Of a stretch of 64,000 bases of DNA, positions 3,776-62,809 are shown piece after piece; the first letter of the stretch is position 1; each line of letters starts with the position of its first letter. Position numbers and translations under genes: made by a program. The notes below the pieces were generated by a model. That model was not told the origin of the DNA. It saw nothing but the letters and a program-made list of their open reading frames with translations, and searched no databases. The DNA lies in the IMG/VR virus record IMGVR_UViG_3300010399_000031, positions 1 through 64,000 of that record; one strand, 5' to 3'.

Positions 3776-5239
3776 ATGGAACATCTCATGCCCGGCTTTG
3801 TCCGGATCCCGCTGCACAAAGCCATGATCAATATTGGGGCTGGCTTTGACATCGCTACCGGAACTTTCCTGGAAGGCAAGTATGGTGAAATGATTCTGAA
3901 CGGGGGAGTGGCGAATATCACCGGTATCGCAGGGCCGGGTAACAGCTTTAAGTCAACGCTGATGGATTGGATGCTCTTTACCGCGATGATTCGCATCTGT
4001 GAAGAGTCCACCGGCAGCAAGTATGACACGGAAATGAACGTACACGAATGGCGCCTGAAGATGGTCTGCGCCATGATTCAACACTGGTTGAGTCTGGATG
4101 ACCAGCCGGACGTATTCGATCAGGGTCGCTTTATCATCACCGACAAAACCAAACACACGGGTGATGAATGGTACGAAATTCTTCGCGAGTATCTCACCGA
4201 GACGAAGAAAAAAGCACTCAAGCAATTGATGCGCAATACGCCTTTCCAAGAGCGCGACGGCAGCCTGATGCAAATTCCGGTACCCACGTTCACCGGGGTC
4301 GATTCGTTCTCACAGTTCATCTCGGCCAATGCAATGAAGATCCAGGAAGAAAATCGCATTGGCACGTCCGACACGAACATGTTGAACATGAATCAGGGAC
4401 GCGCCAAAGCGCAGTTCTTGATGGATATTCCGGCGCTGGCGCAGGCTGTGTACAACTACGTGTTTCTTACGGTACATATCGGGGAAGAGTATCAACTCGA
4501 TCCGCGCAATCCGAAGCAAAAGAAGTTGCAGTATCTGAAGCAAGGTCAGAAGATCAAGGGTGCGCCGGAAGGTTTTCTATTTCTCACCAATAATTGCTGG
4601 CTCTCGTCAAGCGCCAGTTTACTTCAAGCTGACGACGGTAATGGTCCGCAGTATCCGCGTGATTCGGACGACAAGCTCAAGAAAGACACCGATCTGAACG
4701 AGGTGACAGTGACGTTGTTGCGGGGTAAGTCAGGTCAATCGGGGTTGCCTTGGCAAGTGGTGGTTTCGCAATCCGAAGGGGTACAACCTTCCTTGACTGA
4801 ATTTCACTACATGCGTGGGGTGAAAGAGTCGGGCGATAAGCGTTGGGGGTTCGAAGGTAATCTTCAGAACTACGCACTCGATTTGCTGCCGAGTGTGCGT
4901 CTGTCGCGCACCACGATCCGTAACAAGATCGATGAAGACGCGCAGCTGCGGCGCGCACTTAATATCTCGTCCGAGATTTGCCAGATGAACGCGCTTTGGC
5001 ACAACATGGACCAGTACATTGTCACCCCTGCTGAATTGTACACCAAACTTAAGGAAAAGGGCTACGACTGGAACACACTGCTCAATACACGGGGTTGGTG
5101 GACCATCGATAACGAGAGCCCCAAACACGCTCAGCCGTTTCTCTCCAGCATGGACTTGTTACGGATGGTCAAGGACGAGTATCACCCATATTTCTTGGAA
5201 ACGGATAAGAAGACCTTGAAAAAGGAATACCAGAAATGA
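3776..5239 (+). CDS. uvsX: UvsX/RecA-like recombinase
   Basis: Walker A GPGNSFKST, YDTE motif, Walker B-like GVDSFS; size and context match the phiKZ-like RecA. Confidence 0.85.
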   Translation: MEHLMPGFVRIPLHKAMINIGAGFDIATGTFLEGKYGEMILNGGVANITGIAGPGNSFKSTLMDWMLFTAMIRICEESTGSKYDTEMNVHEWRLKMVCAMIQHWLSLDDQPDVFDQGRFIITDKTKHTGDEWYEILREYLTETKKKALKQLMRNTPFQERDGSLMQIPVPTFTGVDSFSQFISANAMKIQEENRIGTSDTNMLNMNQGRAKAQFLMDIPALAQAVYNYVFLTVHIGEEYQLDPRNPKQKKLQYLKQGQKIKGAPEGFLFLTNNCWLSSSASLLQADDGNGPQYPRDSDDKLKKDTDLNEVTVTLLRGKSGQSGLPWQVVVSQSEGVQPSLTEFHYMRGVKESGDKRWGFEGNLQNYALDLLPSVRLSRTTIRNKIDEDAQLRRALNISSEICQMNALWHNMDQYIVTPAELYTKLKEKGYDWNTLLNTRGWWTIDNESPKHAQPFLSSMDLLRMVKDEYHPYFLETDKKTLKKEYQK

Positions 5240-6597: not shown

Positions 6598-7188
6598 ATG
6601 GGTTTGAGTGCAGAAGAAATGGATCGTGTTGGTGATCTGGTCAATACCGCTGTACTCACAGCTATCTCCACTGCTTCGGAGGCTTTGCGTCCGAAGCTTC
6701 TGGGTTTTAGCATCAGCCTTGTGCTCAGAGAGATACCATATCAACTCTTCTCGGGTCAACTGGAGGGCACTAAGCGCTTGGCTGACTTGATGTATCAGGA
6801 TGACGCCATTCGGGATTTTATCTTGACGGTGACGATGCACATCTTCGCTAAATTTGGCGATACGCAAACTCGTTACCCGGCTTTGGTCGATAACATCGCC
6901 CAAGCCATTGGTTTCATCGATGCACCGGCCCCACGCGATAAGAAAGAGGCCGAAAGTACGCCACTTGTCATTGTTCCGGATGAATTGCAAGAGCGACTCC
7001 CCACGATTGACGATGTGCGCGACATCTTGCTTTACAATCGCTGGGCAACCACTTTGGCATTAATGATTCTGTACCTTATGCCGGTGGATGATTTGAATCA
7101 CATCTGGAACGAGCATCTCGAAAGAAAAGCCAAAGCAGAGAAAATCGCTCGCGCTAAAGAGGCAATAATCACCCAAACACCTGGTTAA
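6598..7188 (+). CDS. hypothetical protein (phiKZ-like core neighbourhood)
   Basis: 196-aa ORF starting 3 nt after the gp149-like gene. Confidence 0.7.
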   Translation: MGLSAEEMDRVGDLVNTAVLTAISTASEALRPKLLGFSISLVLREIPYQLFSGQLEGTKRLADLMYQDDAIRDFILTVTMHIFAKFGDTQTRYPALVDNIAQAIGFIDAPAPRDKKEAESTPLVIVPDELQERLPTIDDVRDILLYNRWATTLALMILYLMPVDDLNHIWNEHLERKAKAEKIARAKEAIITQTPG

Positions 7189-7365
7189 TTGTAACAAAAT
7201 CCTTTGTGGAAATTATAAAAATAAGCCCAGGGGTACTTGTTATGCAGTAAGGGAGAACGGATAAAAAAGCAGCGAAATGCCTGCACGAATAGGTCGTTCA
7301 ACAAGCAATGAATTTCAAAGCTCAAGAACGTATATTAACCTTTTCAATGCCGGGGGTATGGGCAA

Positions 7366-8151
7366 ATGGCTCATGCTAACAAAGTCGAGGGCATTTTGAT
7401 CGGGCTCGATGAGGTGCTCGATACTCGACTGGGGACCATCGGCCTTCTCTCTGGGGAGGCCGCGAAGCAATGCCTTTCCTCGAAACAATATTTCGAACGA
7501 GAGACAGATGAGTTTGACGGCGTGAACATGATCGAATACAAGATCCGATACGCCGAACGGGACCTGGCAGTACTAAAGAACTCGGTGATGACAAGTGCGA
7601 TCTTCCATCTCCGGGATCTACTAAGACAACTGAAGAAACAAGCGGTAACTACGCCGAATCACGATGGCGTTCAAGTAACCGTGAACCTTTATCCCTACCC
7701 TCTGAGTGAGGAAGAAAAAGAGGAATTGCGTAGGGTTTTGTTAGAGCGCTTAAACGGTGGCGCATCTTTAAGGGTAAGTGGAAAGGACCTCGTGTCGATT
7801 GAGTTCATCTACAAGAAGCCAGAGGAACTGACTCCAGCCCACTGCAAAGCGTCTTATGGTGCCATGTACATGTATAACCCATGGACTTGGTTGAACCATT
7901 TTTACAAACCGGAGACCTTCGAAACCGAAGTCAGGTTGCCTGAAGTGATCATCTATGCACCACGTTTATTCCACGACGGAAAACCGGATGCTGATGCTCT
8001 TCGACAATACCAGGCGGAGTTTGTAGGAAAGGCTCCCGACCCCCTTACGTTTGACGAGTTCCGCGTGTCGCCGATAGCCGGGGTGACGCACCTCGACGTA
8101 GGGTATTTCAGCAGTTCTGTGCGCCTTCAGCGTAACCAGGCAACGACATAA
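7366..8151 (+). CDS. hypothetical protein, degenerate HAD-like N-terminus
   Basis: ILIGLDEVLDTRLG resembles a degenerate HAD motif I. Confidence 0.65.
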   Translation: MAHANKVEGILIGLDEVLDTRLGTIGLLSGEAAKQCLSSKQYFERETDEFDGVNMIEYKIRYAERDLAVLKNSVMTSAIFHLRDLLRQLKKQAVTTPNHDGVQVTVNLYPYPLSEEEKEELRRVLLERLNGGASLRVSGKDLVSIEFIYKKPEELTPAHCKASYGAMYMYNPWTWLNHFYKPETFETEVRLPEVIIYAPRLFHDGKPDADALRQYQAEFVGKAPDPLTFDEFRVSPIAGVTHLDVGYFSSSVRLQRNQATT

Positions 8152-21562: not shown

Positions 21563-23194
21563 ATGAGCGCGAAACTCGATATCCCGTTCAATTTGACACT
21601 CTTGCAACTGACTCCGGCTAAGCTGCACCTGATGCGGCCGGTGAAAGTGCTTGACAGTTTCGATGGTACGGGCAGCAATTTTCATCCCGATGGGTTGTTC
21701 AGTACCGAGATTTTTGGCCGGGTCGGAGACGAGCTGCGTTCGCGCCGCTTTTCCTACATCGACATCAAGATCTCGATTTTCCACCCGATCATTTATCGCG
21801 CACTGGCGGATTTGAAACAGCTGTACATGGGCATTATCGCTGGCACTGAATATGCCGTGTTCGATGATGAGGAAAAGGACTTCGCTCGGTCGGACTCAGT
21901 GCATGGGAAAACGGGGTTTCAGTTCTTTGTCTCCAACTGGAAACGTATCGAGTGGAAGGACACCAAATCGGTATCACGTGAACACAACATCAAGCTTATT
22001 CAGATGTATCAGGATAAGTGCATGATTGACCATGTGGTGGTCTTGCCCGCTGGTTTGCGCGATATGGAGATTTTGGCAGACGGTCGCCCGCAGGAAGACG
22101 AAGTCAATTCGCTCTATCGGCGACTACTGATGGTGGCCAATACGATCAGCGACGCTTCGATTGCGCATAACCCTGAGGTGATCAACAATACGCGCTTCAC
22201 ACTTCAAAAGAGCTTCAATCAGATTTACTCGACCTACGAGGAGATGATTGCGGGTCGCCGTAAGTTGATTCAAAACCGTTGGGTCTCGCGCCGTATCTTT
22301 AACGGCACGCGAAATGTGATTACCGCAGCGGACACGGCAGTTGCGTACCTAGGTGCACCAGGTGGTATGAGTATCAACGATACGGGTGTTGGCTTGTATC
22401 AGACACTTAAGATGCTGCTACCGGTATCGAAGTATTTGCTGCGCACAAGCTTTCTATCCACGGTTTTTGTAGCAGCCGATCAACCGGCGCAATTGGTGAA
22501 CAAAAAGACTCTCAAAGCTGAACCGGTAACCCTCAAACCGACAATGTACGATCGCTGGATGACCGATGAAGGGCTTGAAAAAGTCATCGCAGCTTTTGCC
22601 CATGAGGACAATCGCCACAAACACTTGGAGTTAGAGAACCACTATCTGGGTCTGATTTACAAGGGACCCGATGGCACATTTCGTTTGATGCACGATATCG
22701 ATGAAGTGCCGCAAGGGCGCGAGAAGAAAGACGTTCACCCCCTCACCTTTTGTGAGTTGCTGTACTGCTCAACGTATTTTGCGCTCAATAAATATCCAGT
22801 CTTTGTGACGCGTTACCCGGTCACAGGAATTGGCTCGATCTATCCGTCGATGGTTTTCTGTCAGACGACGATCAAATACGAAAAGCGCCACGAGTTATCC
22901 CTCAACTGGGATCCGATGGGTGAGGAGCGTACCGCTTATCAATTTCCCATCACAGGAAGCGCATTTGTCAACACATTGATTCCTCATCCAGCTAAACTCG
23001 TGGGTCTGGGTGCTGACTTTGATGGAGATACGTGTTCAGGTAACTCGATCTACACGAAAGAAGCGGTCGATGAAGTACATCGCTTTTTACAGACCGTGCG
23101 CGCTTATGTCAACACCAATGGCGAGTTTATGGCCTCCACCTCTACCGATACGGTAGAACTCGTCTTGCACAATTTCACTGGGGTTAAAGAATGA
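21563..23194 (+). CDS. virion RNA polymerase beta' subunit (phiKZ gp180-like)
   Basis: GLFSTEIFG, RYP and the catalytic GADFDGD motif. Confidence 0.95.
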   Translation: MSAKLDIPFNLTLLQLTPAKLHLMRPVKVLDSFDGTGSNFHPDGLFSTEIFGRVGDELRSRRFSYIDIKISIFHPIIYRALADLKQLYMGIIAGTEYAVFDDEEKDFARSDSVHGKTGFQFFVSNWKRIEWKDTKSVSREHNIKLIQMYQDKCMIDHVVVLPAGLRDMEILADGRPQEDEVNSLYRRLLMVANTISDASIAHNPEVINNTRFTLQKSFNQIYSTYEEMIAGRRKLIQNRWVSRRIFNGTRNVITAADTAVAYLGAPGGMSINDTGVGLYQTLKMLLPVSKYLLRTSFLSTVFVAADQPAQLVNKKTLKAEPVTLKPTMYDRWMTDEGLEKVIAAFAHEDNRHKHLELENHYLGLIYKGPDGTFRLMHDIDEVPQGREKKDVHPLTFCELLYCSTYFALNKYPVFVTRYPVTGIGSIYPSMVFCQTTIKYEKRHELSLNWDPMGEERTAYQFPITGSAFVNTLIPHPAKLVGLGADFDGDTCSGNSIYTKEAVDEVHRFLQTVRAYVNTNGEFMASTSTDTVELVLHNFTGVKE

Positions 23195-26100
23195 TTTATT
23201 ACGACCTCTTTTTCCGTAAGTTCGGCATTCGACGTGTCGATAAGTTGCTCTCTCCGCCGCTGGCCGCGACGCGTCTGATGGAGTTACCGCTGCTTTCGAT
23301 CTACCACTATCTGGGATCGAACACCGGGGTCGATGTGGCGCCTTCCTCGAACGAATACCTCTTTCGCAACATCACGCGCTCGATCGCCATTCAACACATC
23401 ACGGAGCCAGGGGCCCGTCTTGGCTTGCCGCAAAAGCACGTGGTGAGTTGGCCCCAGGTCATTCGTCACTACCAGTCGCGCAATCGTCGTTTTCAACAAA
23501 TCAGTAAGCTCGCGCAGTATGAAAACACACCGATGACATTGGTGGTGCAAAACTACGGATTTATTCCGTTGGGGTTAAAGTACCAGCGTAACGTGCTCAG
23601 TGCGTATTACCAATGGCATAATCAGCAAGCGGCATTGTGGGATCGAGTAGCAATGTTAGCTGGTGAGAGTGTGCGTAATCAGTTTGTTAAGTTTAACTTA
23701 CCGACAACATTGCCGTCGGTGGGCGACTTGCAACAAGCACAAGCGAAGATGAATGCCACCACCATTCATCATGTCTACGAACCCGATGCTTTTGTGATCT
23801 TGGAGCTGTGGAAGTGGTTGGGCGATTACCGCTCTGAGTCGCTGCTTGCACGAGTGCCGGAAGACAAACTCTCGAAAGTGAACATCATCTTCGAGGAGTC
23901 AGGCCGCTGGTTGATGCTTAACCTGGGTTTGCTCAATAGCTGGCGCAACACCCCGAAGGTGGAGTTGACCAAACTGGCTGAAGGACAAAACCCGAACCAC
24001 TCGGGTATCGATTCGCACCAGTTGCAACGTCGTTTTCTTGGGATGCTGATGCGGCTTTTCCAAGCGCGTTCGGTTTCGAATAAGGATCTCGGAGAAGACG
24101 TCGTCAATGAGGATAGCGACGGAAAAAAATCCGACGGTAGTGAAGAAGCTACACTGACCGCTCCGGTGTCTTCGCTACCAAAGGTCAACCCGGTAACCGG
24201 CAGCACAAGCACGGCGTTGGTCGACACGCAAGTGCGCACCAACCCGCTCGACATTCTCAACCCGAATCGGGATGAGCAGCAAACGCAGACACAGCTGCAT
24301 TTGAGCGTTGAGCAAGAGCGTCAACTCGAAGCGGATCTGTTGGAGCTGGATCGTATCAGTAAGGCGGTGATTCAGCGGCGCAAAGAGATGATGGAGTTCA
24401 TGGTCGAAAACGACGAAGAACCCCTATCTGCCACGCAAGGGATGCGTTTGGGTCAGACGCAAGTATCAAACCCGATACAAGCGCCGCGTAAGCTACCCGA
24501 GCTTAAACCAATCGATCCGAAACCAGAGGTAAGTGCAACCACCCATGATTACACCTCAGGGGTGCAAAAGCTTATCGATCGGCACGCTGAGCAAGGTATG
24601 CTCTCGGCTGCTGAAGTGCGGCGTTATCAGGAATTGGCACGCAAGCATGAATCGATCACGGCGCCCGATGGTAAGGGTAGCATGAAAGATTTCGTGGTGG
24701 TGCACCCGGAGGCGGTGAAGGTAGAGGCGAAAACCATCCCGGATAAGCCGTCGATTTTCGACAAGAGCATGCTTGCCTCGACGCTACACGAGTTCACCCC
24801 GAAGTATGTGGAAAACGTGTTGCAAAAAGACGTCGCGGCGATGGTGCTGAAGATTCAAGATGCTGGCTACTGCGTGACCGATTACGAAGTCGAACATGTG
24901 GAACAGATCACGGGTGATTACGACATGTACACCTGTCGCGTGACGCCGGTGGAGGGTTCCGCATCCACACTGCGCTGGAAACTGCCGTCGGTGCGAGCCG
25001 ATGGTGTGTTTGTTGCCAATAACGTACCTTACCGGATGCGCACGCAACGCGGGGACTTGCCGATTCGAAAGATCGAAACTTCCCGCGTGGGTCTGACCTC
25101 TTACTACGGGAAAGTGTTTGTCACCCGTAGTGAAAAGAAGGTGAACGACTACGGTGACTGGCTAAGGCGTAACATCATGGCGGCTGGCTTGGACCTGGAT
25201 AACCCGCACGTCAGTGCACTTCACCCAGCTAACGTGTTTGATCATCTCTTTCAAGCACCGCGCCTTTACAGCATCTGTGCCATGGGTTTTCGCGGCTTTA
25301 CGGTGAAACCTGGTGCTTGGCCTGAGAAGGTGAAGTTCAGTAGCCTGGAGTTTAACTTTGACCACACCAAGCGTGAGCAGCTTTACGGTAAAGACGTATT
25401 AGCGCGGGTGGAAAAAGAAGGGGCGTTGATGGTGGGAACCACCGATAAGCGCGATCCGATGATCATGACCGCCGATGGTGGGATCTCGGTGATCGCCGAT
25501 GGTAAGATGATCAATCTCGCCTCGTTCGATGAGTTGTGCGGTTTTGATCCGATGAAAGCGCCGGTCGATTTTGCGGTGGTCTCGGTCTTCGGTCAGAACA
25601 TCCCGCTGGGTGTGGTGCTTGCCTACGAGATGGGACTCTCGTCTTTGCTCAAACACCTTGGGGTAGAACCCAGACGTGTTCCGGCAGGTAAGCGGGTAGG
25701 ATTAACCGGTGAAGAGTACTCGATCGCGTTTGCCGATGAGACGCTTGTGTTTCGCAAGAAAGACAAGTTGCCTGCGATTATCTTGGCAGGCTTTAACGAG
25801 TACTGGAAAGCGGTCAAGCAGTATAGCGTCTACGAGTTCGATAAGCGTGGCGTGTACCTGAATGTGTTGGAAGCATCAGGCGTTGGTTCGCGTTACCTGC
25901 GAGAAATCGATTTACTCTATCAACTCTGGGTAGATCCGATTACCCGTGAGCTGTTGGTGGAGCTGCACGAACCCACTCAGTTCCAGGACATCTTGCTGCG
26001 TGCGGCGGAGTTACTCCTTACCGATACGCACCCGCGCACGCTTGACACCTCTTACCAACGTTTTAAGGGCTATGAGCGTTTTGCAGGGGCCGTTTATACG

Positions 26101-26520
26101 GAACTTGTCAACGCGATTCGTACGCACAATGGGCGTCCGGGTAAGAGCAAGCAGCCGCTCGATTTGAACCCGTTCGAAGTCTGGAAAGCGATCTCTGAAG
26201 ACCCATCGAAGTTGACGGTCAAGGATATCAACCCGATTGAGAACTTGAAACAACAGGAGTCTGTTACCTACTCAGGAACCGGTGGACGCAATTCACGGTC
26301 GATGACGAAAAACACCCGCGCGTACGATGAGAACGACATGGGGGTAATTTCTGAATCCACGGTGGACTCGTCCGATGTGGCGGTGAACACTTACATGAGT
26401 GCGAACCCGCAGTTTGTCTCTTTGCGTGGCTTGACCAAACGCTATGATCTGCACAAAACTGGCGCTACGTCTTTGCTCTCCACCTCGGCCTTGCTCTCCG
26501 TCGCCGCTGACAAAGATGAT
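23191..26520 (+). CDS. virion RNA polymerase beta subunit (gp178-like), exon 1
   Basis: 1110 codons ending ..AADKDD; joined to exon 2 it restores DDPKRVNF (RpoB HDDANRAL equivalent). Predicted spliced product 1494 aa. Confidence 0.9.
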
Positions 26521-27913
26521 TAAAGGAATGTTGTGAATAGCAATGAAATCTACTCTTCATCCTATGTTAATCGCTTTTGGGGTGAAGACGTATGGAAAAG
26601 ATCGAACCGGTTGAATCAATTGGTTTTCCAGGTTATTACGAAATTCCGGGGTTTAGTTTTCGATACGCAATTGATCGAGAAGGACGTGTAATTAACAAAT
26701 TGACTCGGAAAGTTCTTTCTGGAAGTGTCAATTCAAAAGGTTACTGCCATTATCGATTAATTGCTAACGATCTTCTGGTCTTAACGATCGGGAGACATAG
26801 GCTCCTGGCTTTCGTATTCAAACACCCTGGTGTTTCGTTAAAAGGTCTTGTGGTTAATCACCTGAACGGGATTCCAGGAGATGATCGTTTGAATAACTTG
26901 GAATGGACAACGCACAAAGGGAACATTGAACACGCAGGTATGTTGGGTCTTACGACCAAATGCATACCGGTATCTGTTCGAGACATCGATACGGGTGTCG
27001 TTATAAAGTTTCCGAGTATCGTTGAGTGTGCTCGTCATTTTGGGGTTACCAAAGATACGATCAATTGGCGTGTAAAAGTAGGTGAGGCGAAACTGTTTCC
27101 AGATCGGAAACAATATCGAACCACACGCGCTGATGATCCGTGGATTTCCCCCGGTAATATGGTGGATGAGAAAGTTGAGTTTGGAAGATCGAGATGCATC
27201 CTACTTCGGTACTTGGATAGCGAAACGGTTGTGGTGTTTCCTCAACTCCAACAATTGGCATCGCATCTCGGTGTCTCACCCGCAACCATCACACTCTGGC
27301 TTAACCAGCCCAATCAACCAGTACTCCCTGGTTGCATCCAGATAAAATTGGCAAGTGATCAGACTCCATGGAGAACGATTGCTGATCCTCGTCTGGAACT
27401 TGAAAACTATACGGGTAAAAAATCCGTCGTGGTGACCAAGACAGCAACCGGAGAATCTAAGATCTTTGATTCAGCTGTGGAATGTGCAAGAAGCATGGGA
27501 ATATTGCCAACCACCCTGAATCTCCGACTGAAATCGAAGGGAACAAAAACTTTCTCTGATGGTTTTAGTTATTGCTACTATTCAGATATTCCAAGGTCCT
27601 ACTCGACGGTAACGTTGAGATAGAATGCTCTCTAATTGCTGGAACCCCCTTAGAGCTGATTCACCAAAGCGAAGTGCGAAAGCACAGACGTTACGGTTGG
27701 AAAACGAATCAGATTGGGCAATCAGCAGCCAAGCCTCCCTGCGCAAGCGAGAGGAAGGTTCAACGACTAACCGCTTATCACGGTGTACCTGACCAAGTGG
27801 CAGGGAAATGGGAGCCGTCCTAAATGGACGAAGATATAGTCTGGACATTCAGGGAAATCCTGAAGCAGCACGTAATGGTGCGGCCTAGAATAACGACCTA
27901 GGTGAACATCTCG
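26521..27913 (+). mobile_element. group I intron (1393 nt) with homing endonuclease ORF
   Basis: P AATTGCTGGAA 27634-44, Q AATCAGCAGCC 27720-30, R GTTCAACGACTAA 27758-70, S AAGATATAGTCT 27831-42. P3 GCTCTC/GGGAGC, P7 GACTA/TAGTC. Exon 1 ends in T, intron ends in G. Confidence 0.92.
26592..27623 (+). CDS. intron-encoded HNH homing endonuclease (NUMOD4-HNH-NUMOD1 repeats, I-HmuI-like)
   Basis: HRLLAFVF..VVNHLNGIPGDDRLNNLEWTTHKGNIEHA; three repeats FPSIVECARHFGV, FPQLQQLASHLGV, FDSAVECARSMGI. Confidence 0.9.
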   Translation: MEKIEPVESIGFPGYYEIPGFSFRYAIDREGRVINKLTRKVLSGSVNSKGYCHYRLIANDLLVLTIGRHRLLAFVFKHPGVSLKGLVVNHLNGIPGDDRLNNLEWTTHKGNIEHAGMLGLTTKCIPVSVRDIDTGVVIKFPSIVECARHFGVTKDTINWRVKVGEAKLFPDRKQYRTTRADDPWISPGNMVDEKVEFGRSRCILLRYLDSETVVVFPQLQQLASHLGVSPATITLWLNQPNQPVLPGCIQIKLASDQTPWRTIADPRLELENYTGKKSVVVTKTATGESKIFDSAVECARSMGILPTTLNLRLKSKGTKTFSDGFSYCYYSDIPRSYSTVTLR

Positions 27914-29068
27914 CCCAAGCGTGTCAACTTCATCGCCATCCAGCACGGACACGGCGTTGCCTGTGCCGGCTACCACGCCAGCGCCGTTCGCACAGGCTAT
28001 GAGCAAGTCATTGCGCATCGCACAAGCGACCTCTATGCAACGACGGCGAAAAAACCTGGTAAGGTGATTTCACTCGATGAGCGGGGGATGATTGTCGAGT
28101 ACGATGACGGCAGCAAACAAGGCATTGAGTTGGGGCGACGCTTTGGTACGGCAGAAGGCTCAACCATCCCGCACGATGTGCGCGCTGCGGTTAAACCTGG
28201 GGCGAAGTTTAAAGTCGGGGATGTACTCGCTTACAACGAGGGGTTCTTTGAACCTGACTTTATCGACCCTTCTCAGGTGGTATGGAAGCCCGGTGTCACG
28301 GTCAAAGTGGCGCTCATGGAGAGCCCTCTGACGCTGGAGGACTCTTCCGCCATTAGTGCTCCGACAGCTAACCTTTTACGCACCAAAACGACTAAAGAAC
28401 GCGAGATTATCGTGAACTTTAAGCAGACGGTGCGGGAGATGGTGAAGGTCGGTCAAGCGGTCTCGTCCGAGGATATTTTATGCGTGATCGAAGACGAAAC
28501 CACGGCACGCAACGAACTCTTTGACAAAGAGTCGCTGGACACGCTACGCGTGCTTTCAGCGCAAACGCCTCAAGCCAAAGTCAATGGCATCGTGGAGCGC
28601 ATCGAGGTGTACTATCACGGTGAAAAAGAGGATATGTCGGATTCGTTGCGGCTACTGGCCAATGCATCAGATCGGGAGTTTGCAGCGCGTCACCGCTCAG
28701 TAGGACGCACGGTGATGACAGGTCAGGCGGGCGACAGCTACCGCAGCGATGGCGATCCGCTGCTACTGGACACTCTTGCAATCAAGATTTACATCACTGC
28801 CGAGGTCCCGGCCGGGGTGGGTGATAAGGGGGTGTTTGGTAACCAGATGAAGACGGTGTTCGGAACAGTGTTGGAGCACGAGGTGACGACCGAGTCGGGT
28901 GAGAAAATCGGTGCGATCTTTGGCGCGAAGAGTATTCAAGCGCGGATCGTACACTCTCCTGATCAGATCGGAACTACGACGACCAATCTGAACCTATTGG
29001 CCGCGCGCGTGGTGCGAACCTATCACCGACAGCCGCAACCTGCGCCGCTTAAGTCGCATAAAGACTGA
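27914..29068 (+). CDS. virion RNA polymerase beta subunit (gp178-like), exon 2
   Basis: Starts PKRVNFIAIQH; contains LEDSSAIS and GVGDKGVFGNQMKTV (RpoB GDKMAGRHGNKGV equivalent). Confidence 0.9.
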   Translation, partial: PKRVNFIAIQHGHGVACAGYHASAVRTGYEQVIAHRTSDLYATTAKKPGKVISLDERGMIVEYDDGSKQGIELGRRFGTAEGSTIPHDVRAAVKPGAKFKVGDVLAYNEGFFEPDFIDPSQVVWKPGVTVKVALMESPLTLEDSSAISAPTANLLRTKTTKEREIIVNFKQTVREMVKVGQAVSSEDILCVIEDETTARNELFDKESLDTLRVLSAQTPQAKVNGIVERIEVYYHGEKEDMSDSLRLLANASDREFAARHRSVGRTVMTGQAGDSYRSDGDPLLLDTLAIKIYITAEVPAGVGDKGVFGNQMKTVFGTVLEHEVTTESGEKIGAIFGAKSIQARIVHSPDQIGTTTTNLNLLAARVVRTYHRQPQPAPLKSHKD

Positions 29069-58821: not shown

Positions 58822-59625
58822 TTATCTGTTTCCACCCATGTTCATCCGGATAAGTCGAGTCCAGCTTTCCCGATCGTTCATGAGGGCGGTCTTGGCCCAC
58901 TTCTCGGTCAGGTGGGTTTGATACAATTCTTCAGCATCGGCCCAACCATCGACGATCTCACGAAAACGCCCTAGGTTTTGACCACCGTAGAGTTGCCCCT
59001 TATCCATCTGAATGGTGTATTGGCTGAAGATAAAAGACTTCACCGCCAACTCCACCAATTTGGCAAACGAGCGGTATGAGCGCAGCTGGATGTGCGACAT
59101 ATTCTCGTCATTGGCCAAAATACAGCGCAGATAGATGTTAGCGGGCAACACCACCGTGTCACGCACCATCACCACGTTCTCGCCGATCAGTTGCACATAA
59201 GCGGTGGATGTAACCGGCATCGAACCCATCGCATCCATCACTGCTTGCGTACCTTGCAGCATGAAGGTGTTCTGATCCCCTGCGGCTACGCCATAGGAGG
59301 AGACTTTGGTCGGATCCGAGAACGTGATGTTCATCACACTCATGATCGAGCGACCCTGAGTCTTGTCTTTCGGAATCCGATAGATCGAAGTGTAATCATT
59401 CTGACGGTATGCCGGAATCCCATCGAGCGGAATGAACACTTCCGTGCCACCTACCAAATTGCAGTCGACCAACACGTGCGGGCGCACCACAAGAGACATC
59501 AACTGCTCATCGAGATCCATGAACGCGTCGCGATAACCCTGCTCCACGGGAGTAAAGACGGTGCGCAGGATGTCCATGGGAATGATGCGCTTCACATTGG
59601 CAAGCGCGTAGCGTACGCAATCCAT
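58822..59625 (-). CDS. phiKZ-like conserved virion protein
   Basis: GAGGG RBS; YAL..VK..IP..IL N-terminus and VLVDCNLVGG block. Confidence 0.7.
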   Translation of the reverse strand: MDCVRYALANVKRIIPMDILRTVFTPVEQGYRDAFMDLDEQLMSLVVRPHVLVDCNLVGGTEVFIPLDGIPAYRQNDYTSIYRIPKDKTQGRSIMSVMNITFSDPTKVSSYGVAAGDQNTFMLQGTQAVMDAMGSMPVTSTAYVQLIGENVVMVRDTVVLPANIYLRCILANDENMSHIQLRSYRSFAKLVELAVKSFIFSQYTIQMDKGQLYGGQNLGRFREIVDGWADAEELYQTHLTEKWAKTALMNDRESWTRLIRMNMGGNR

Positions 59626-60051: not shown

Positions 60052-60699
60052 ATGAACCGTGTCTTCCGTATGGCCTTGGAGAATTTGTCTCCAGACATGA
60101 AGTTGTACCATTACGCAGCTCAAAAACACGAGGTGTTAAAAACCGTTGAAGTTCGCAGCAAGATTTCCAAGACTAAGCAAGCCGATGCGTTTGAGGACAT
60201 GAAGATCCACAAAGATCCTGGTACGTATCTCCAGCATATCTCGTTTTTCCTTGAATCGGTTCCCCTGGATGTAGTGGGTCGTGTCTTCGGAAAAGATCAT
60301 CCGTTCTGGTATCCCGGACACGATATTTTCGAACACGTGGTCAGTCTTGATCGCATGTCGGATTTTAAGTACCGAATTGTTGAGTCCCCGCTGGCGAATA
60401 AGATGTTCTACGATACGGATTGGGATGAACTCGACGACAACGACAAGTTGGTGTTTTTCCGCAAACTCGCCGAAGCGCAGAAAGCTGCCGGGGAAATCGG
60501 TAAAGGAGCCAGCCAATTCCATAACGCAGCTATTAAACTAATTGGTTCGACTCGGCGCGCATTTGAGGAGCTACCCAAACAACCTAATTGGGATGAGATC
60601 AAAAAACAGTATGCTGCGACCGTTCCGCATGTGATGTTGTATCCAGAAGGCGGTGAAGTAAAAGTCGATGAAATTCATGAAGTGAAAATCCCGCACTAG
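60052..60699 (+). CDS. putative head protein
   Basis: Start MNRVFRMALE (ALE maturation motif); HISFFLE and YAATVPH blocks. Confidence 0.6.
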   Translation: MNRVFRMALENLSPDMKLYHYAAQKHEVLKTVEVRSKISKTKQADAFEDMKIHKDPGTYLQHISFFLESVPLDVVGRVFGKDHPFWYPGHDIFEHVVSLDRMSDFKYRIVESPLANKMFYDTDWDELDDNDKLVFFRKLAEAQKAAGEIGKGASQFHNAAIKLIGSTRRAFEELPKQPNWDEIKKQYAATVPHVMLYPEGGEVKVDEIHEVKIPH

Positions 60700-60757
60700 G
60701 TTTTTAGTGGGCGATCTCCTTCCTATGTGAAGATCTGCTAACAAGGAGTTTAAAGAA

Positions 60758-61759
60758 ATGACTCAGGAACTGAATACCCGTGGCAAAGTGCGCATCTACG
60801 CCTGCGGCGGCTGCGGCGTGAACATCGGTTCGATGTTGGAAAAATGGCGACCCGATCCTTCGCCGACGATTGCTCAACTAGACATCGCCTACATCGACAC
60901 CTCGCGCTCGAACCTCAAACACGTGAACGCGCCGGCCGATCGCATCTACCTGTTCGAAGGTTTGGACGGCTCGGGTCAGATTCGCAAGGAAAACGTCAAG
61001 GACATCTCGGTGAAAGTGGCCGACATTCTGGACACGTTCGAACCGCAAGACCTCGCGATCGTGCTGCACTCGGCCTGTGGCGGTTCGGGTTCAGTCATCG
61101 GCCCCTCGATCGTCTCGGCACTGCTCGAAGCGAAGAAAGCCGTGATCGTGCTCATGGTCGGTTCAGCCGACACGCGACTCGATGCGCTGAACACGATGAA
61201 TACCCTGAAATCGTACGACTCGATCGCCAAGATGCGGGGTCTACCGGTGGTGCTCTCGTACCAGCAAAACAGTCGTGAAAACAAACGCGAAGCGGTCGAC
61301 GAACAGATGGTTGGCACTGCCGTGTCGCTCGCGATTCTGTGGTCGGCGAACAATCGGGAACTGGATTCGAAGGATCTGTACAACTTCCTGAACTTCCACA
61401 TCCCGACCACGTTCGAGGCGCAGGTGGCACACCTCACCTTGCTGCAACCGGACGACACGCTCAGCGAAGACGTCGGTCAAGTCATCTCCGTGGCAACCCT
61501 CGCAAAACGTGGGCAAGACACGGCGCTCGACCCGGCCCCTGAAGTGCAGTATCGCGGCTTTCTCGCCGACGACGCCCCCGATCGACTGCTGGCGGCCATG
61601 CCGACGCATTTCTTCGTGACCGACGGCATCCTCGACGAAGTGAACATGATGCTCAAAACCACCCTCAAGCAACACGAGGTCCAACAACAATCGAGGACAA
61701 CCAAGGAGGGATTCCTCACCGATGCTGACAAGCCTACGCATTCTGGCTTGGTTCTTTAA
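60758..61759 (+). CDS. phuZ: PhuZ phage tubulin
   Basis: ACGGCGVNIG, IDTS, GSG and SACGGSGSVIG tubulin/FtsZ signatures; ELDSKD T7-like loop. Confidence 0.93.
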   Translation: MTQELNTRGKVRIYACGGCGVNIGSMLEKWRPDPSPTIAQLDIAYIDTSRSNLKHVNAPADRIYLFEGLDGSGQIRKENVKDISVKVADILDTFEPQDLAIVLHSACGGSGSVIGPSIVSALLEAKKAVIVLMVGSADTRLDALNTMNTLKSYDSIAKMRGLPVVLSYQQNSRENKREAVDEQMVGTAVSLAILWSANNRELDSKDLYNFLNFHIPTTFEAQVAHLTLLQPDDTLSEDVGQVISVATLAKRGQDTALDPAPEVQYRGFLADDAPDRLLAAMPTHFFVTDGILDEVNMMLKTTLKQHEVQQQSRTTKEGFLTDADKPTHSGLVL

Positions 61760-61774
61760 ACAGACCAAGTTCAG

Positions 61775-62221
61775 TTGGCTGGTTCATCAGTTAGCATGGG
61801 TTAAACGAGTCCGTCAGGTGTGGCCAAGAGCGGTCTTGGCTACGCTATTTAAAGTGACCGCTAGACAACGCCGAAGGCGCCTACCGCGCATTAAGAGGAT
61901 GCGTATGGACACGCCTTTTGCGCAAGTCTTGGGGATTGCTAAATCCTGACGGAATTCGCCCCCTGGACTAACTACCCTGATCCAGTCGATCTTTCGTTAA
62001 AACTTGTCAAAATCTGTCAAGTTGGGCATAGCACATGAGAGAGTTGAAGACGCACTCGATACCAAGAGATCATCGGGGTTTGATCACCCTGACTTGATCG
62101 TATGAGTGGTAAATACGTCTACACCATGTCGCACGATACGCCCTGAGGGGCCGCCTTGAGAGCTAACCCGAACTCCCGCCCTAAGGGGCGCATCGGTGCG
62201 TAGTCGGCGGGCCCCTCACCA
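61775..62221 (+). ncRNA. candidate structured non-coding RNA (three domains)
   Basis: Nested long-range helices with G-U pairs consistent with the + strand; see findings. Confidence 0.5.
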
Positions 62222-62242
62222 CCACCCTTTTGGAGGAACCTG

Positions 62243-62344
62243 ATGTTTAGGAGACTAAGAGAATGGTGGGAGTTTTGGATGGATTTTCGAGCTTTCATGA
62301 AAGAACTTAAAGAAGTCAAGAACTCAACCACACTATCCAAATAG
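62243..62344 (+). CDS. 33-aa peptide, not in ORF track
   Basis: GGAGGA RBS; MFRRLREWWEFWMDFRAFMKELKEVKNSTTLSK*; stop overlaps the RBS of the next gene. Confidence 0.6.
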   Translation: MFRRLREWWEFWMDFRAFMKELKEVKNSTTLSK

Positions 62345-62353
62345 GAGACCAAC

Positions 62354-62599
62354 ATGTTTGGCCGGTTCTTTAACTGGCTCTTCAGAAAAGAAATTGCAGC
62401 TACGAAAAACGTATTTAGCGATGCGTCGTGTTCGTACTGTGAAAGTCGAGGTTTTTACCAGTACTCGATCGATGAAGTAGCCGTCTACAGTTGCACCCAC
62501 TGCCGCAACGCTTTCACGTTGCCGCGCAACATCTGTACGCTAAGTGATGCAGATCAGGCATTGCCCGAGAAACAGAACACACCCCTTGGCGCGCTTTAG
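62354..62599 (+). CDS. small zinc-ribbon protein
   Basis: AGGAG RBS; CSYC..CTHC. Confidence 0.7.
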   Translation: MFGRFFNWLFRKEIAATKNVFSDASCSYCESRGFYQYSIDEVAVYSCTHCRNAFTLPRNICTLSDADQALPEKQNTPLGAL

Positions 62600-62605
62600 C
62601 GCGAT

Positions 62606-62664
62606 TGAGTCAGTTTTGCTATCTGTCTTCTATCCAGGAGGCGATAGCAAAACTGACTTATGCC
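62606..62664 (+). terminator. long hairpin + TATGCC
   Basis: TGAGTCAGTTTTGCTATC/GATAGCAAAACTGACTTA stem plus inner stem. Confidence 0.65.
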
Positions 62665-62809
62665 GTTATACGGGATAGTCCTTGGAACAAAGTGAAAGAC
62701 AATTCAGCTTTAAACATAGCTCTAAAACGCACCAGAACGGGCGTAGAGCGGCTCCTTTATCCTTTTTTATACGCACCACGTATCTTGTGGTACAAAGCCG
62801 GGAAAACCG

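Follow-up and report, generated by a model that had tools for sequence, protein, structure and literature searches.

What fills the roughly 480 nt that follow the phage tubulin gene phuZ in a giant phage from soil, where no credible ORF precedes the next start codon with a ribosome binding site (at position 62243)? The DNA analyzed here, referred to as the window, is a stretch of 64,000 nt at the start of an IMG/VR virus record of 243 kb, which is 81% complete and was assembled from soil metagenomes. Besides PhuZ it encodes the beta subunit of a split multisubunit RNA polymerase, and it was therefore attributed to a phiKZ-like giant phage. Among cultured phages, the closest PhuZ relatives are found in Burkholderia phage FLC9 (42%) and in giant phages of Xanthomonas and Ralstonia. 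A preliminary description, made from the sequence alone, had proposed an undescribed RNA domain of about 215 nt directly after phuZ. According to our analysis, the gap holds a new RNA family, a non-coding RNA of about 450 nt directly after phuZ without any known relative. That it is a real and conserved structured RNA, we consider very likely.

Genomic context of the post-phuZ RNA

The phuZ gene is complete before the RNA begins, with PhuZ residues 8-333 aligning to positions 3-323 of the 323 positions of the PHROG profile, and only 15 nt separate its stop codon from the RNA start in the window. The RNA is present as a single copy in the 243-kb genome, in which ARAGORN found no tRNA genes. In every lineage that has the RNA, phuZ is invariably located upstream on the same strand, and the downstream neighbor varies among relatives: a 33-aa ORF, ORFs of 70-80 aa, tRNA-Thr plus tRNA-Ser, or nothing. 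The two tRNA genes occur in loci L001 and L002, beginning 25 nt past the RNA (ARAGORN), and in relatives the RNA and the next gene can be separated by 60 to ~190 nt of unrelated sequence. Neither a sigma-70-type promoter nor a + strand intrinsic terminator was found within 60500-62700, in a scan that is blind to phage-specific signals.

Folding energy and absence of coding

The + strand of 61775-61990 folds with a minimum free energy (MFE) of -95.4 kcal/mol, compared with -66.6 +/- 4.8 kcal/mol for 200 dinucleotide shuffles, none of which folded as well (z -5.97). The refuting condition named in the preliminary description, folding no better than shuffled sequence, was thus not fulfilled. All complementary segments listed in the preliminary description were confirmed at the positions it gave, and nearly all of them are paired in the MFE fold. 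The whole gap (61760-62245) reached a z of -5.31, and domain 1, the part of the RNA covered by the preliminary description, ranged from -1.7 to -6.6 in 12 other distinct homologues. Folding energy alone leaves the strand undecided, because good folding was obtained for the minus strand too (z -4.78). The frequent G-U pairs, which become A-C mismatches on the opposite strand, place the RNA on the + strand, and their reading as a + strand sign in the preliminary description held.

No conserved ORF was detected, the longest stop-free frame differing from homologue to homologue, so the earlier statement that the region contains no credible ORF also held. A micro-ORF starting at the AUG of a GUAUGG motif was considered and rejected; this AUG is missing in 7 of 20 members, and the resulting peptides vary in both length and sequence.

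Conservation and covariation

A protein search with PhuZ returned graded relatives ranging from 94% to 51% identity. An RNA homologue of 430-510 nt follows the phuZ stop codon in all 13 of these loci for which DNA was available (nhmmer E 1e-28 to 1e-126), and we refer to them as group A, a clade of phiKZ-like giant phages from soil that are uncultured and carry PhuZ and a split multisubunit RNA polymerase. A covariance model (R1) was built from seven sequences on an RNAalifold consensus of 28 pairs. It matched 14 of 14 loci at full length and on the + strand only, the seven sequences outside its training set obtaining E-values from 1e-20 to 4e-4. In the window, the R1 score is 134 bits, and the best minus-strand match does not exceed 11.8 bits.

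In the alignment fitted to R1, 90.7% of cells pair, compared with 37-44% when the partners are slid by 1-3 columns. Changes on both sides are found in 22 of the 28 modelled pairs, and none of 500 shuffles reached any of five measures. Pairing is kept by compensatory change across sequences that are only 55-75% identical. As the R1-fitted alignment leans toward the model, alignment-free swap tests were also run, in which the duplex energy of a sequence's own two strands is compared with that of strands exchanged between sequences. Own strands paired better than swapped ones (p < 5e-5 each) for helix P4 (-13.2 vs. -6.4 kcal/mol), helix P7 (-9.0 vs. -5.4 kcal/mol) and the rod P5-P6 (-23.3 vs. -17.7 kcal/mol). 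MAFFT brought P3, P7 and, in half of the set, P4 into register and misaligned P4, P5 and P6, for which reason covariance-model realignment and the swap tests were used. Due to kinship among the sequences and the small size of the family (14 + 5 + 1 loci), the shuffle statistics overstate independence.

Architecture of domain 1

The coordinates of all features are given in Table 1. The core of domain 1 (61810-61953) is a three-way junction consisting of the closing helix P3, hairpin P4 placed directly on P3, and the rod P5-P6 with P7. One plan recurs in the folds of individual homologues, with the order outer closure, P3, P4, A-rich linker, knot strand, rod and P7. The multiloop, the rod, the pseudoknot, the + strand and the position directly after phuZ had all been claimed beforehand, and each of these claims held. 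The proposed domain of about 215 nt likewise held as domain 1 of a larger RNA of ~450 nt, as the title of the preliminary description had implied.

Table 1. Features of the phuZ locus and of the RNA that follows it, in window positions.
Feature	Position	Strand	Evidence or remark
phuZ (phage tubulin), 333 aa	60758..61759	+	phrog_4733 'tubulin PhuZ', E 2.7e-81, full length
Complete conserved non-coding RNA, ~450 nt, comprising domain 1, hairpin H and domains 2 and 3	61774..62225 (approx.)	+	Ends inferred from conservation
Outer helix strands overall	5' 61774..61794, 3' 61968..61990	+	MFE fold
Outer helix pair GTTGGCTGG / CCAGTCGAT	61774-61782 / 61982-61990	+	MFE fold, window-specific
Outer helix pair ATCA / TGAT	61786-89 / 61978-81	+	MFE fold, window-specific
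Outer helix pair AGTTAG / CTAACT	61789-94 / 61968-73	+	MFE fold, window-specific
P3 TCCGTCAGG / CCTGACGGA, closing the three-way junction	61810..61818 / 61945..61953	+	Covariation
Hairpin P4 of 12 bp with loop GCGG (61830-33)	61818..61845	+	Covariation, swap test
Pseudoknot strand 1 AGCGGTC, apex of P4	61829..61835	+	Pairs with 61856-62
A-rich linker TATTTAAAGT between P4 and pseudoknot target	61846..61855	+	Target offset mostly 9-12 nt in group A
Pseudoknot strand 2 GACCGCT	61856..61862	+	Compensatory versions in relatives
Rod 5' strand: P5 CTAGAC, P5a CGC, P6 GAAGGCG	61861..61883	+	MFE fold, swap test
P7 hairpin with purine-rich Shine-Dalgarno-like loop motif TTAAGAGGA (61891-61899) and GTATGG bulge	61884..61908	+	Covariation
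P7 stem CGCAT / ATGCG	61887-91 / 61899-61903	+	Sequence
Rod 3' strand CGCCTTT, GCG, GTCTTG, then conserved GGGGATTGC.AAAT	61909..61944	+	MFE fold, swap test
Hairpin H, AACTTG / CAAGTT, loop TCAAAATCTGT	62001..62023	+	8 pairs, several compensatory
Domain 2, closed by GGGC / GCCC and ACATG / CATGT	62024..62143	+	Alignment A4, model R2
Domain 3, long GC stem GAGGGGCCGCC / GGCGGGCCCCTC around hairpin CGCCC-TAAG-GGGCG (62177-62190)	62145..62218	+	16 consensus pairs, 9 compensatory
Tail ACCACCA after domain 3 stem	62219..62225	+	Alignment A8
Small ORF, 33 aa, strong GGAGG site	62243..62344	+	Variable downstream neighbor, outside the RNA

P3 is paired in 98% of cells across 14 sequences, with compensatory changes in five of its eight modelled pairs, and takes the form UCCGUCAGG / CCUGACGGA in the recurring plan of the homologues. 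At the place of P4, all 14 homologues have a hairpin with differing letters, and all seven modelled pairs covary. Immediately after the knot strand comes the rod, which is long and irregular, with P5 (CUAGAC/GUCUUG as RNA) and P6 (GAAGGCG/CGCCUUU), from which the conserved GGGGAUUGC.AAAU runs back into P3, AAAT preceding the P3 3' strand in the window. P7, which ends the rod, reads CC..GCGCAUU-AAGAG-GAUGCGU..GG in this plan. Compensatory changes are found in five of its seven apical pairs, and its loop motif is also kept in the more distant group B and in FLC9 (see below).

Two of the earlier structural claims held only in part. A separate CGCC-GAA-GGCG hairpin is locally possible, and the better reading makes it an element of the rod: it competes with P6, in which GAAGGCG (61873-79) pairs with CGCCTTT (61912-18) in the MFE fold and in the homologues, and both the MFE folds and the covarying strand pairs favor P6. 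The three outer helices are present in the window's own fold, yet neither their sequence nor their register is conserved, and the test of cognate against swapped strands gave p = 0.06 for the outer closure. In L014, the nearest relative of the window, domain 1 is closed by GUGGAAGU/ACUUCCAC, and in most other relatives by a helix of the GGAAGUUCUGGG / CCCAGAACUUCC type. Between the closure and P3 lies a conserved GGGU that is able to pair with RCCC.

The pseudoknot

The loop of P4 is complementary to a strand 3' of the same hairpin, and this complementarity is maintained by compensatory change, which fulfils the comparative criterion for an H-type pseudoknot. The cognate knot duplex has an energy of -8.4 kcal/mol, compared with -6.0 kcal/mol for swapped strands (permutation p ~0.0009). 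Complementarity is found in 13 of 13 distinct group A sequences, with the target lying 9-12 nt past P4 in nine of them (range 1-12). The letters change together, from AGCGGUC/GACCGCU in the window to UGGAC/GUCCA in L017, UGGGU/ACCCA in L019, GGUUG/UAACC in L022 and AGCC/GGCU in L025. The five sequences of group B and FLC9 keep the knot with yet other letters (GUGCA/UGCAC, CGCGU/ACGCG) and a target offset of 11-15 nt.

The length and the A-richness of the linker fit loop 3 of an intramolecular H-type knot; that the knot forms within one molecule together with P4 and P5, and that the linker has a role in a triplex, are inferences. The knot and the two apical pairs of P4 overlap in the window. 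A further overlap concerns the weak proximal part of P5; in L025 and L026 this part of P5 is the stronger of the two pairings, and knot and P5 may alternate as a switch.

Hairpin H, domains 2 and 3 and the tail

Over the whole RNA, alignment A4 contains 45 consensus pairs, 26 of them with compensatory changes. The stem of hairpin H covaries around an invariant loop, one of its pairs being, for example, GC:7, AU:5. Domain 2 carries the conserved GAGAGARYTGAAGACGCACT and AATACGTCTGGACC on either side of a variable arm, and its closing 5-bp helix covaries. A model of domain 2 (R2) found no match in the whole genomes of FLC9, RTH11 and LucasX or in 78 other phuZ loci (described below), and since R2 matches only in group A, domains 2 and 3 are specific to this group. 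ACCA stands directly behind the domain 3 stem in five of 13 lineages and at a shifted position in one more; seven lineages lack it. The tail beyond domain 3 is pyrimidine-rich. Between the window and L014, DNA identity is 81-91% in phuZ, 76% in the domain 1 core, 61% in the variable arms and 86% in domain 3.

Distribution beyond group A

A profile scan of IMG/VR yielded 78 more phuZ loci with 30-47% identity. R1 matches three of these (L170, L172 and L180) at full length on the + strand, ~70 nt past the phuZ stop, with E-values of 0.03-0.2. Together with the related L181 and L168 they form group B (PhuZ 42-47%), whose shared consensus of 49 pairs follows the same plan and includes the P7 motif GAUACCGC...AAAGAGGA...GGUAUGGAC. 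Reciprocally, a model built from the five group B sequences only (R3) matches the window at 61809-61954 with 18 bits (E 0.26 in 485 kb), the boundaries lying within one base of those of R1 at each end. As the reciprocal matches fall on the same address, homology of the group A and group B cores is likely. In group B, the ~650 nt that follow phuZ surpass phuZ itself in conservation without codon periodicity, and they lack the third-position substitution excess that is seen in the flanking phuZ and in the next ORF. The contig of L170 (143.7 kb) is filed by NCBI under Caballeronia arationis, which hints at a possible Burkholderiaceae host.

In the cultured phage FLC9 (LC667451; host Burkholderia glumae), an unannotated gap of 770 nt follows phuZ (record positions 7020-7789, minus strand of the record; z -7.06). 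R1 matches weakly in this gap, with 9.4 bits (E 0.011 in 901 nt), and the P3-P4-knot-rod-P7 layout is present there, which is suggestive of the same module without being conclusive. The PhuZ phages RTH11, LucasX, RSL2 and RP31 have a gap of only ~55-240 nt after phuZ.

Searches of phage records and IMG/VR by DNA and motif yielded two relatives only. Blastn against 50,697 phage records gave no match to the window RNA, and the FLC9 gap matched only itself. Exact-motif scans of IMG/VR recovered two known relatives only, three further loci from the motif scans being dismissed as sharing 17 nt by chance. A PhuZ-based scan of JGI metagenomes returned the window's own contig and one known relative only. 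A gapped motif of hairpin H plus GCACG hit 13 loci in IMG/VR and more than 120 in GTDB genomes; none of these matched R2, and the hits were therefore regarded as chance.

Relation to known RNA families

Scanning the window with Rfam 15 (4227 models), only the group I intron model RF00028 passed, at 27556-27865 and thus outside the region. Within 61600-62450 the best hits were Mu-gpT-DE (E 2) and sR44 (E 7.8), both meaningless, and no model matched the corresponding region in 10 homologues, in L001 or in FLC9. ARAGORN called no tRNA or tmRNA in the window, its genome or 12 loci, except for the genuine tRNA genes that follow the RNA in L001 and L002. A literature search found no report of a post-phuZ RNA. 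An IMG/VR catalogue (PMC10690425) contains motifs of 29-151 nt only, and the listing of a fragment in its supplements is not excluded. The preliminary description had named an Rfam scan and a covariation analysis of homologues downstream of phuZ as checks; both were run, the latter by covariance models and swap tests, with no family match in the region and strong covariation. Its claim of an undescribed RNA domain consequently held, as there is no Rfam 15 match and both structure and pseudoknot covary.

Several specific identities were considered and rejected. For a group I intron, there is no RF00028 match at this position, PhuZ is unsplit, and the 3' neighbors differ between relatives. A tRNA, tmRNA or tRNA-like end lacks an ARAGORN call, and ACCA occurs in only five to six of 13 lineages. 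Regarding a CsrA/RsmA sponge, GGA is no commoner than composition predicts (hand count), and the P7 loop of three lineages lacks it. A hammerhead-like CUGAAGA in domain 2 has unfit flanking helices and no Rfam match.

Proposed role

The functions named in the preliminary description (decoy, scaffold or phuZ 3' element) remain guesses, as there are no functional data. On balance, we lean toward a trans-acting stable RNA, probably a scaffold; its transcription and function are inferred, since only DNA sequencing runs contain the sequence. Because no sigma-70-type promoter or intrinsic terminator was recognized between phuZ and the RNA, it would probably arise as the 3' portion of the phuZ transcript. 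Its ends, both closed by helices, would shield it from nucleases, so that it would probably endure as a discrete and stable molecule, and in L001 and L002 RNase P cutting of the following tRNAs would free its 3' end. Acting in trans, it would probably serve as a compact scaffold for a protein, for the ribosome or for further copies of itself rather than as a switch of a single neighboring gene. The most concrete lead is the Shine-Dalgarno-like loop of P7, the one element that all three lineages keep and that is also displayed at the rod's tip; a contact with ribosome or protein is inferred from it. The variable downstream gene, the constant phuZ and the absence of a conserved ORF make a free-standing RNA likely in preference to a leader.

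The alternative that survives best is a cis-acting 3' UTR of the phuZ mRNA, which would serve stability against 3' exonucleases, localization, export from the phage compartment or translation of PhuZ, without a role of its own. It is supported by the position of the RNA, always directly after phuZ on the same strand and without a recognizable promoter in between, and the phuZ 3' regulatory element suggested in the preliminary description agrees with it. Against it, ~450 nt with three closed domains, a covarying knot and many invariant unpaired motifs exceed what known bacterial 3' stabilizers need, and the PhuZ phages with short gaps (RTH11, LucasX, RSL2 and RP31) manage without the RNA. Furthermore, tRNA genes adjoin the RNA in two relatives, so that it would be cut from its 3' flank. 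We therefore consider this alternative unlikely. As limits of the present analysis, nothing separates a trans-acting RNA from a cis-acting phuZ 3' UTR, and the outer closing helices are poorly conserved.

A leader or riboswitch-like sensor, in which junction and knot bind a ligand or protein and control the downstream genes, appears very improbable. Junction-plus-pseudoknot aptamers of 100-200 nt are common, which speaks for it, and the pyrimidine-rich tail could pair with the GGAGG of the next small ORF in the window, L014 and L023. Against it, the following gene differs among relatives, being a tRNA in L001 and L002, and the unrelated spacer can reach 60 to ~190 nt. There is also no expression platform such as an intrinsic terminator, and no Rfam riboswitch match.

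We regard as similarly remote a ribozyme or what is left of a mobile RNA element (group I or II intron, RNase P-like or tmRNA-like). Size and complexity are in the range of ribozymes, a group I intron is present elsewhere in the genome, and in several lineages the ...CUC-ACCA that ends domain 3 recalls a tRNA acceptor end. However, no intron, RNase P, tmRNA or small ribozyme of Rfam matches at E up to 10, there is no ARAGORN call, PhuZ is complete without a split gene, and ACCA is absent from seven or eight of 13 lineages. Lastly, a functionless GC-rich spacer with incidental folding, or a DNA-level signal, for which it can be said that good folding extends to the minus strand (z -4.78) and that the sequence is found in DNA runs only, is all but excluded by the compensatory changes at 55-75% identity, by G-U tolerance and model matches on the + strand only, and by a group B region that is more conserved than neighboring coding sequence, unlike the pattern of a DNA signal.

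A bolder version of the preferred scaffold reading would make the P3-P4-pseudoknot-rod-P7 module a new phage effector RNA that docks on the anti-Shine-Dalgarno of the host 30S subunit or self-assembles like the large phage RNAs ROOL and GOLLD. The tip of P7 is near the Shine-Dalgarno consensus (UAAGAGGA in the window, AAAAGGAGGU in L172), and 13 of 20 members carry an AUG five to six bases further on, in an unpaired bulge. Docking through the P7 loop might turn the RNA into a decoy or a recruiting platform during takeover. Both binding and assembly are inferred, and we think this version unlikely.

If the bolder version were true, giant-phage infection would involve this RNA as a trans-acting factor, produced along with the tubulin by which the phage compartment is positioned. 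Large non-coding RNAs with an intricate fold are a rarity, and almost all classes that are understood have turned out to have a fundamental role. The phiKZ-like giant phages that carry PhuZ attract much research, on their cell biology and with a view to phage therapy, and are, to our knowledge, not known to possess a large folded non-coding RNA. The RNA is new as a family, and novelty of its function cannot be read from sequence. Its fixed genomic address and the probable relative in the cultured phage FLC9 make it experimentally accessible.

Comparison with known structured RNAs

Like the xrRNAs of flaviviruses and the tRNA-like ends of plant viruses, the post-phuZ RNA follows a coding region and combines a three-way junction and pseudoknot with a closed 3' stem. 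The ACCA after this stem in some lineages further recalls the 3' UTR blocks of RNA viruses. It differs from these in that it belongs to a DNA phage, has no Rfam match and does not carry ACCA universally.

The arrangement of RNA and tRNA genes in L001 and L002 resembles that of the stable RNAs C and D (species 1 and 2) of phage T4, whose function is unknown and which are co-transcribed and processed with tRNAs. The T4 RNAs are much smaller (~120-140 nt), the window's genome is without tRNA, and the two are not known to be similar.

Some H-type pseudoknots have a third loop rich in A, among them those of viral frameshift signals, telomerase RNA and the SAM-II and preQ1-II aptamers. As in these, a loop pairs just 3' of its hairpin across an A-rich linker of 9-15 nt, whose length would suffice to follow the minor groove of stem 1. 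Unlike these examples, the knot described here is located within a junction of 145 nt and stacked on the rod, and there is no slippery site or coding context.

The pRNA of phage phi29 is a structured phage RNA in which complementarity between loops is kept by covariation as the letters change, and the P4 loop and its target behave in the same way. The phi29 loops pair between molecules, whereas the P4 target, ~10 nt past the hairpin via an A-rich linker, fits an intramolecular knot. In further contrast to pRNA, there is no link to packaging genes and no Rfam match.

Also comparable are GOLLD (RF01998) and ROOL (RF03087), although neither model matches at E up to 10 in the window or 5 in the homologues. 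They likewise comprise several hundred nt with many conserved helices and pseudoknots, are phage-borne and have no known function, and they build RNA-only multimers (bioRxiv 10.1101/2024.12.08.627333). GOLLD and ROOL often adjoin tRNA genes, as does the post-phuZ RNA in the two relatives with tRNAs 25 nt downstream. Unlike GOLLD and ROOL, the post-phuZ RNA is smaller, tied to phuZ and found only in giant phages that encode PhuZ.

Ribosome-binding-site-like elements in the RNA

The loop of P7, the hairpin that ends the rod of domain 1, resembles a ribosome-binding site (window 61891-61907, same place in relatives), reading UAAGAGGA in the window and AAAAGGAGGU in L172, a member of group B. An AUG lies 5-6 nt beyond this motif, inside the unpaired bulge GU-AU-GG, in 13 of the 20 members. 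The peptides that would start there are short and their sequence is not kept among the members.

The tail that follows domain 3 (window 62219-62260; ACCACCACCC) is complementary to the GGAGG of a 33-aa ORF at 62243. Since both the ORF start and this tail are common to the window and the group A relatives L014 and L023, we posit that in these three phages only, the ORF's ribosome-binding site might be masked by the 3' end of the RNA.

Surroundings of phuZ in related phages

In the cultured Burkholderia phage FLC9 (LC667451), phuZ is followed by 770 nt without annotation (positions 3985-4754 of the fetched locus L005; folding z -7.06), which contain a domain-1-like module and several more long helices that bear no relation to the window RNA's domains 2-3. 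This gap may represent a second form of the RNA that is larger. In the group A relatives L001 and L002 (5479-5645), genes for tRNA-Thr(UGU) and tRNA-Ser(UGA) start 25 nt 3' of the RNA; the window's own 243-kb genome lacks tRNA genes altogether. On the other side of phuZ, the divergent phrog_3179/DUF7484 gene is present in all related loci fetched, and its length is very constant.

The group B RNA is also present on L170 (IMGVR_UViG_2724679462_000002), a giant-phage contig of 143,740 nt whose source assembly is filed as that of Caballeronia arationis, a bacterium in culture (protein name AWB81_01853). The phage may therefore have been carried in that culture, and on the basis of this filing C. 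arationis is a possible host for the clade.

Split RNA polymerase gene

The gene for the phage RNA polymerase beta subunit (window 23191-29068, +) is in two pieces. As inferred from sequence alone, the interruption has the appearance of a homing-endonuclease-bearing intron within an essential polymerase gene. An intron with a homing endonuclease in a polymerase gene has been reported for other phiKZ-like phages.

Protein-coding and intron features of the window
Feature	Position	Strand	Remark
phrog_3148 residues 1-1050	23191-26523	+	first piece, beta-subunit gene
HNH endonuclease ORF	26592-27623		between the two pieces
Group I intron match RF00028	27556-27865		70.5 bits; between the two pieces
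phrog_3148 residues 1050-1424	27902-29068	+	second piece, beta-subunit gene
267-aa protein, phrog_3179, Pfam DUF7484	58822-59625	-	function unknown; divergent, upstream of phuZ
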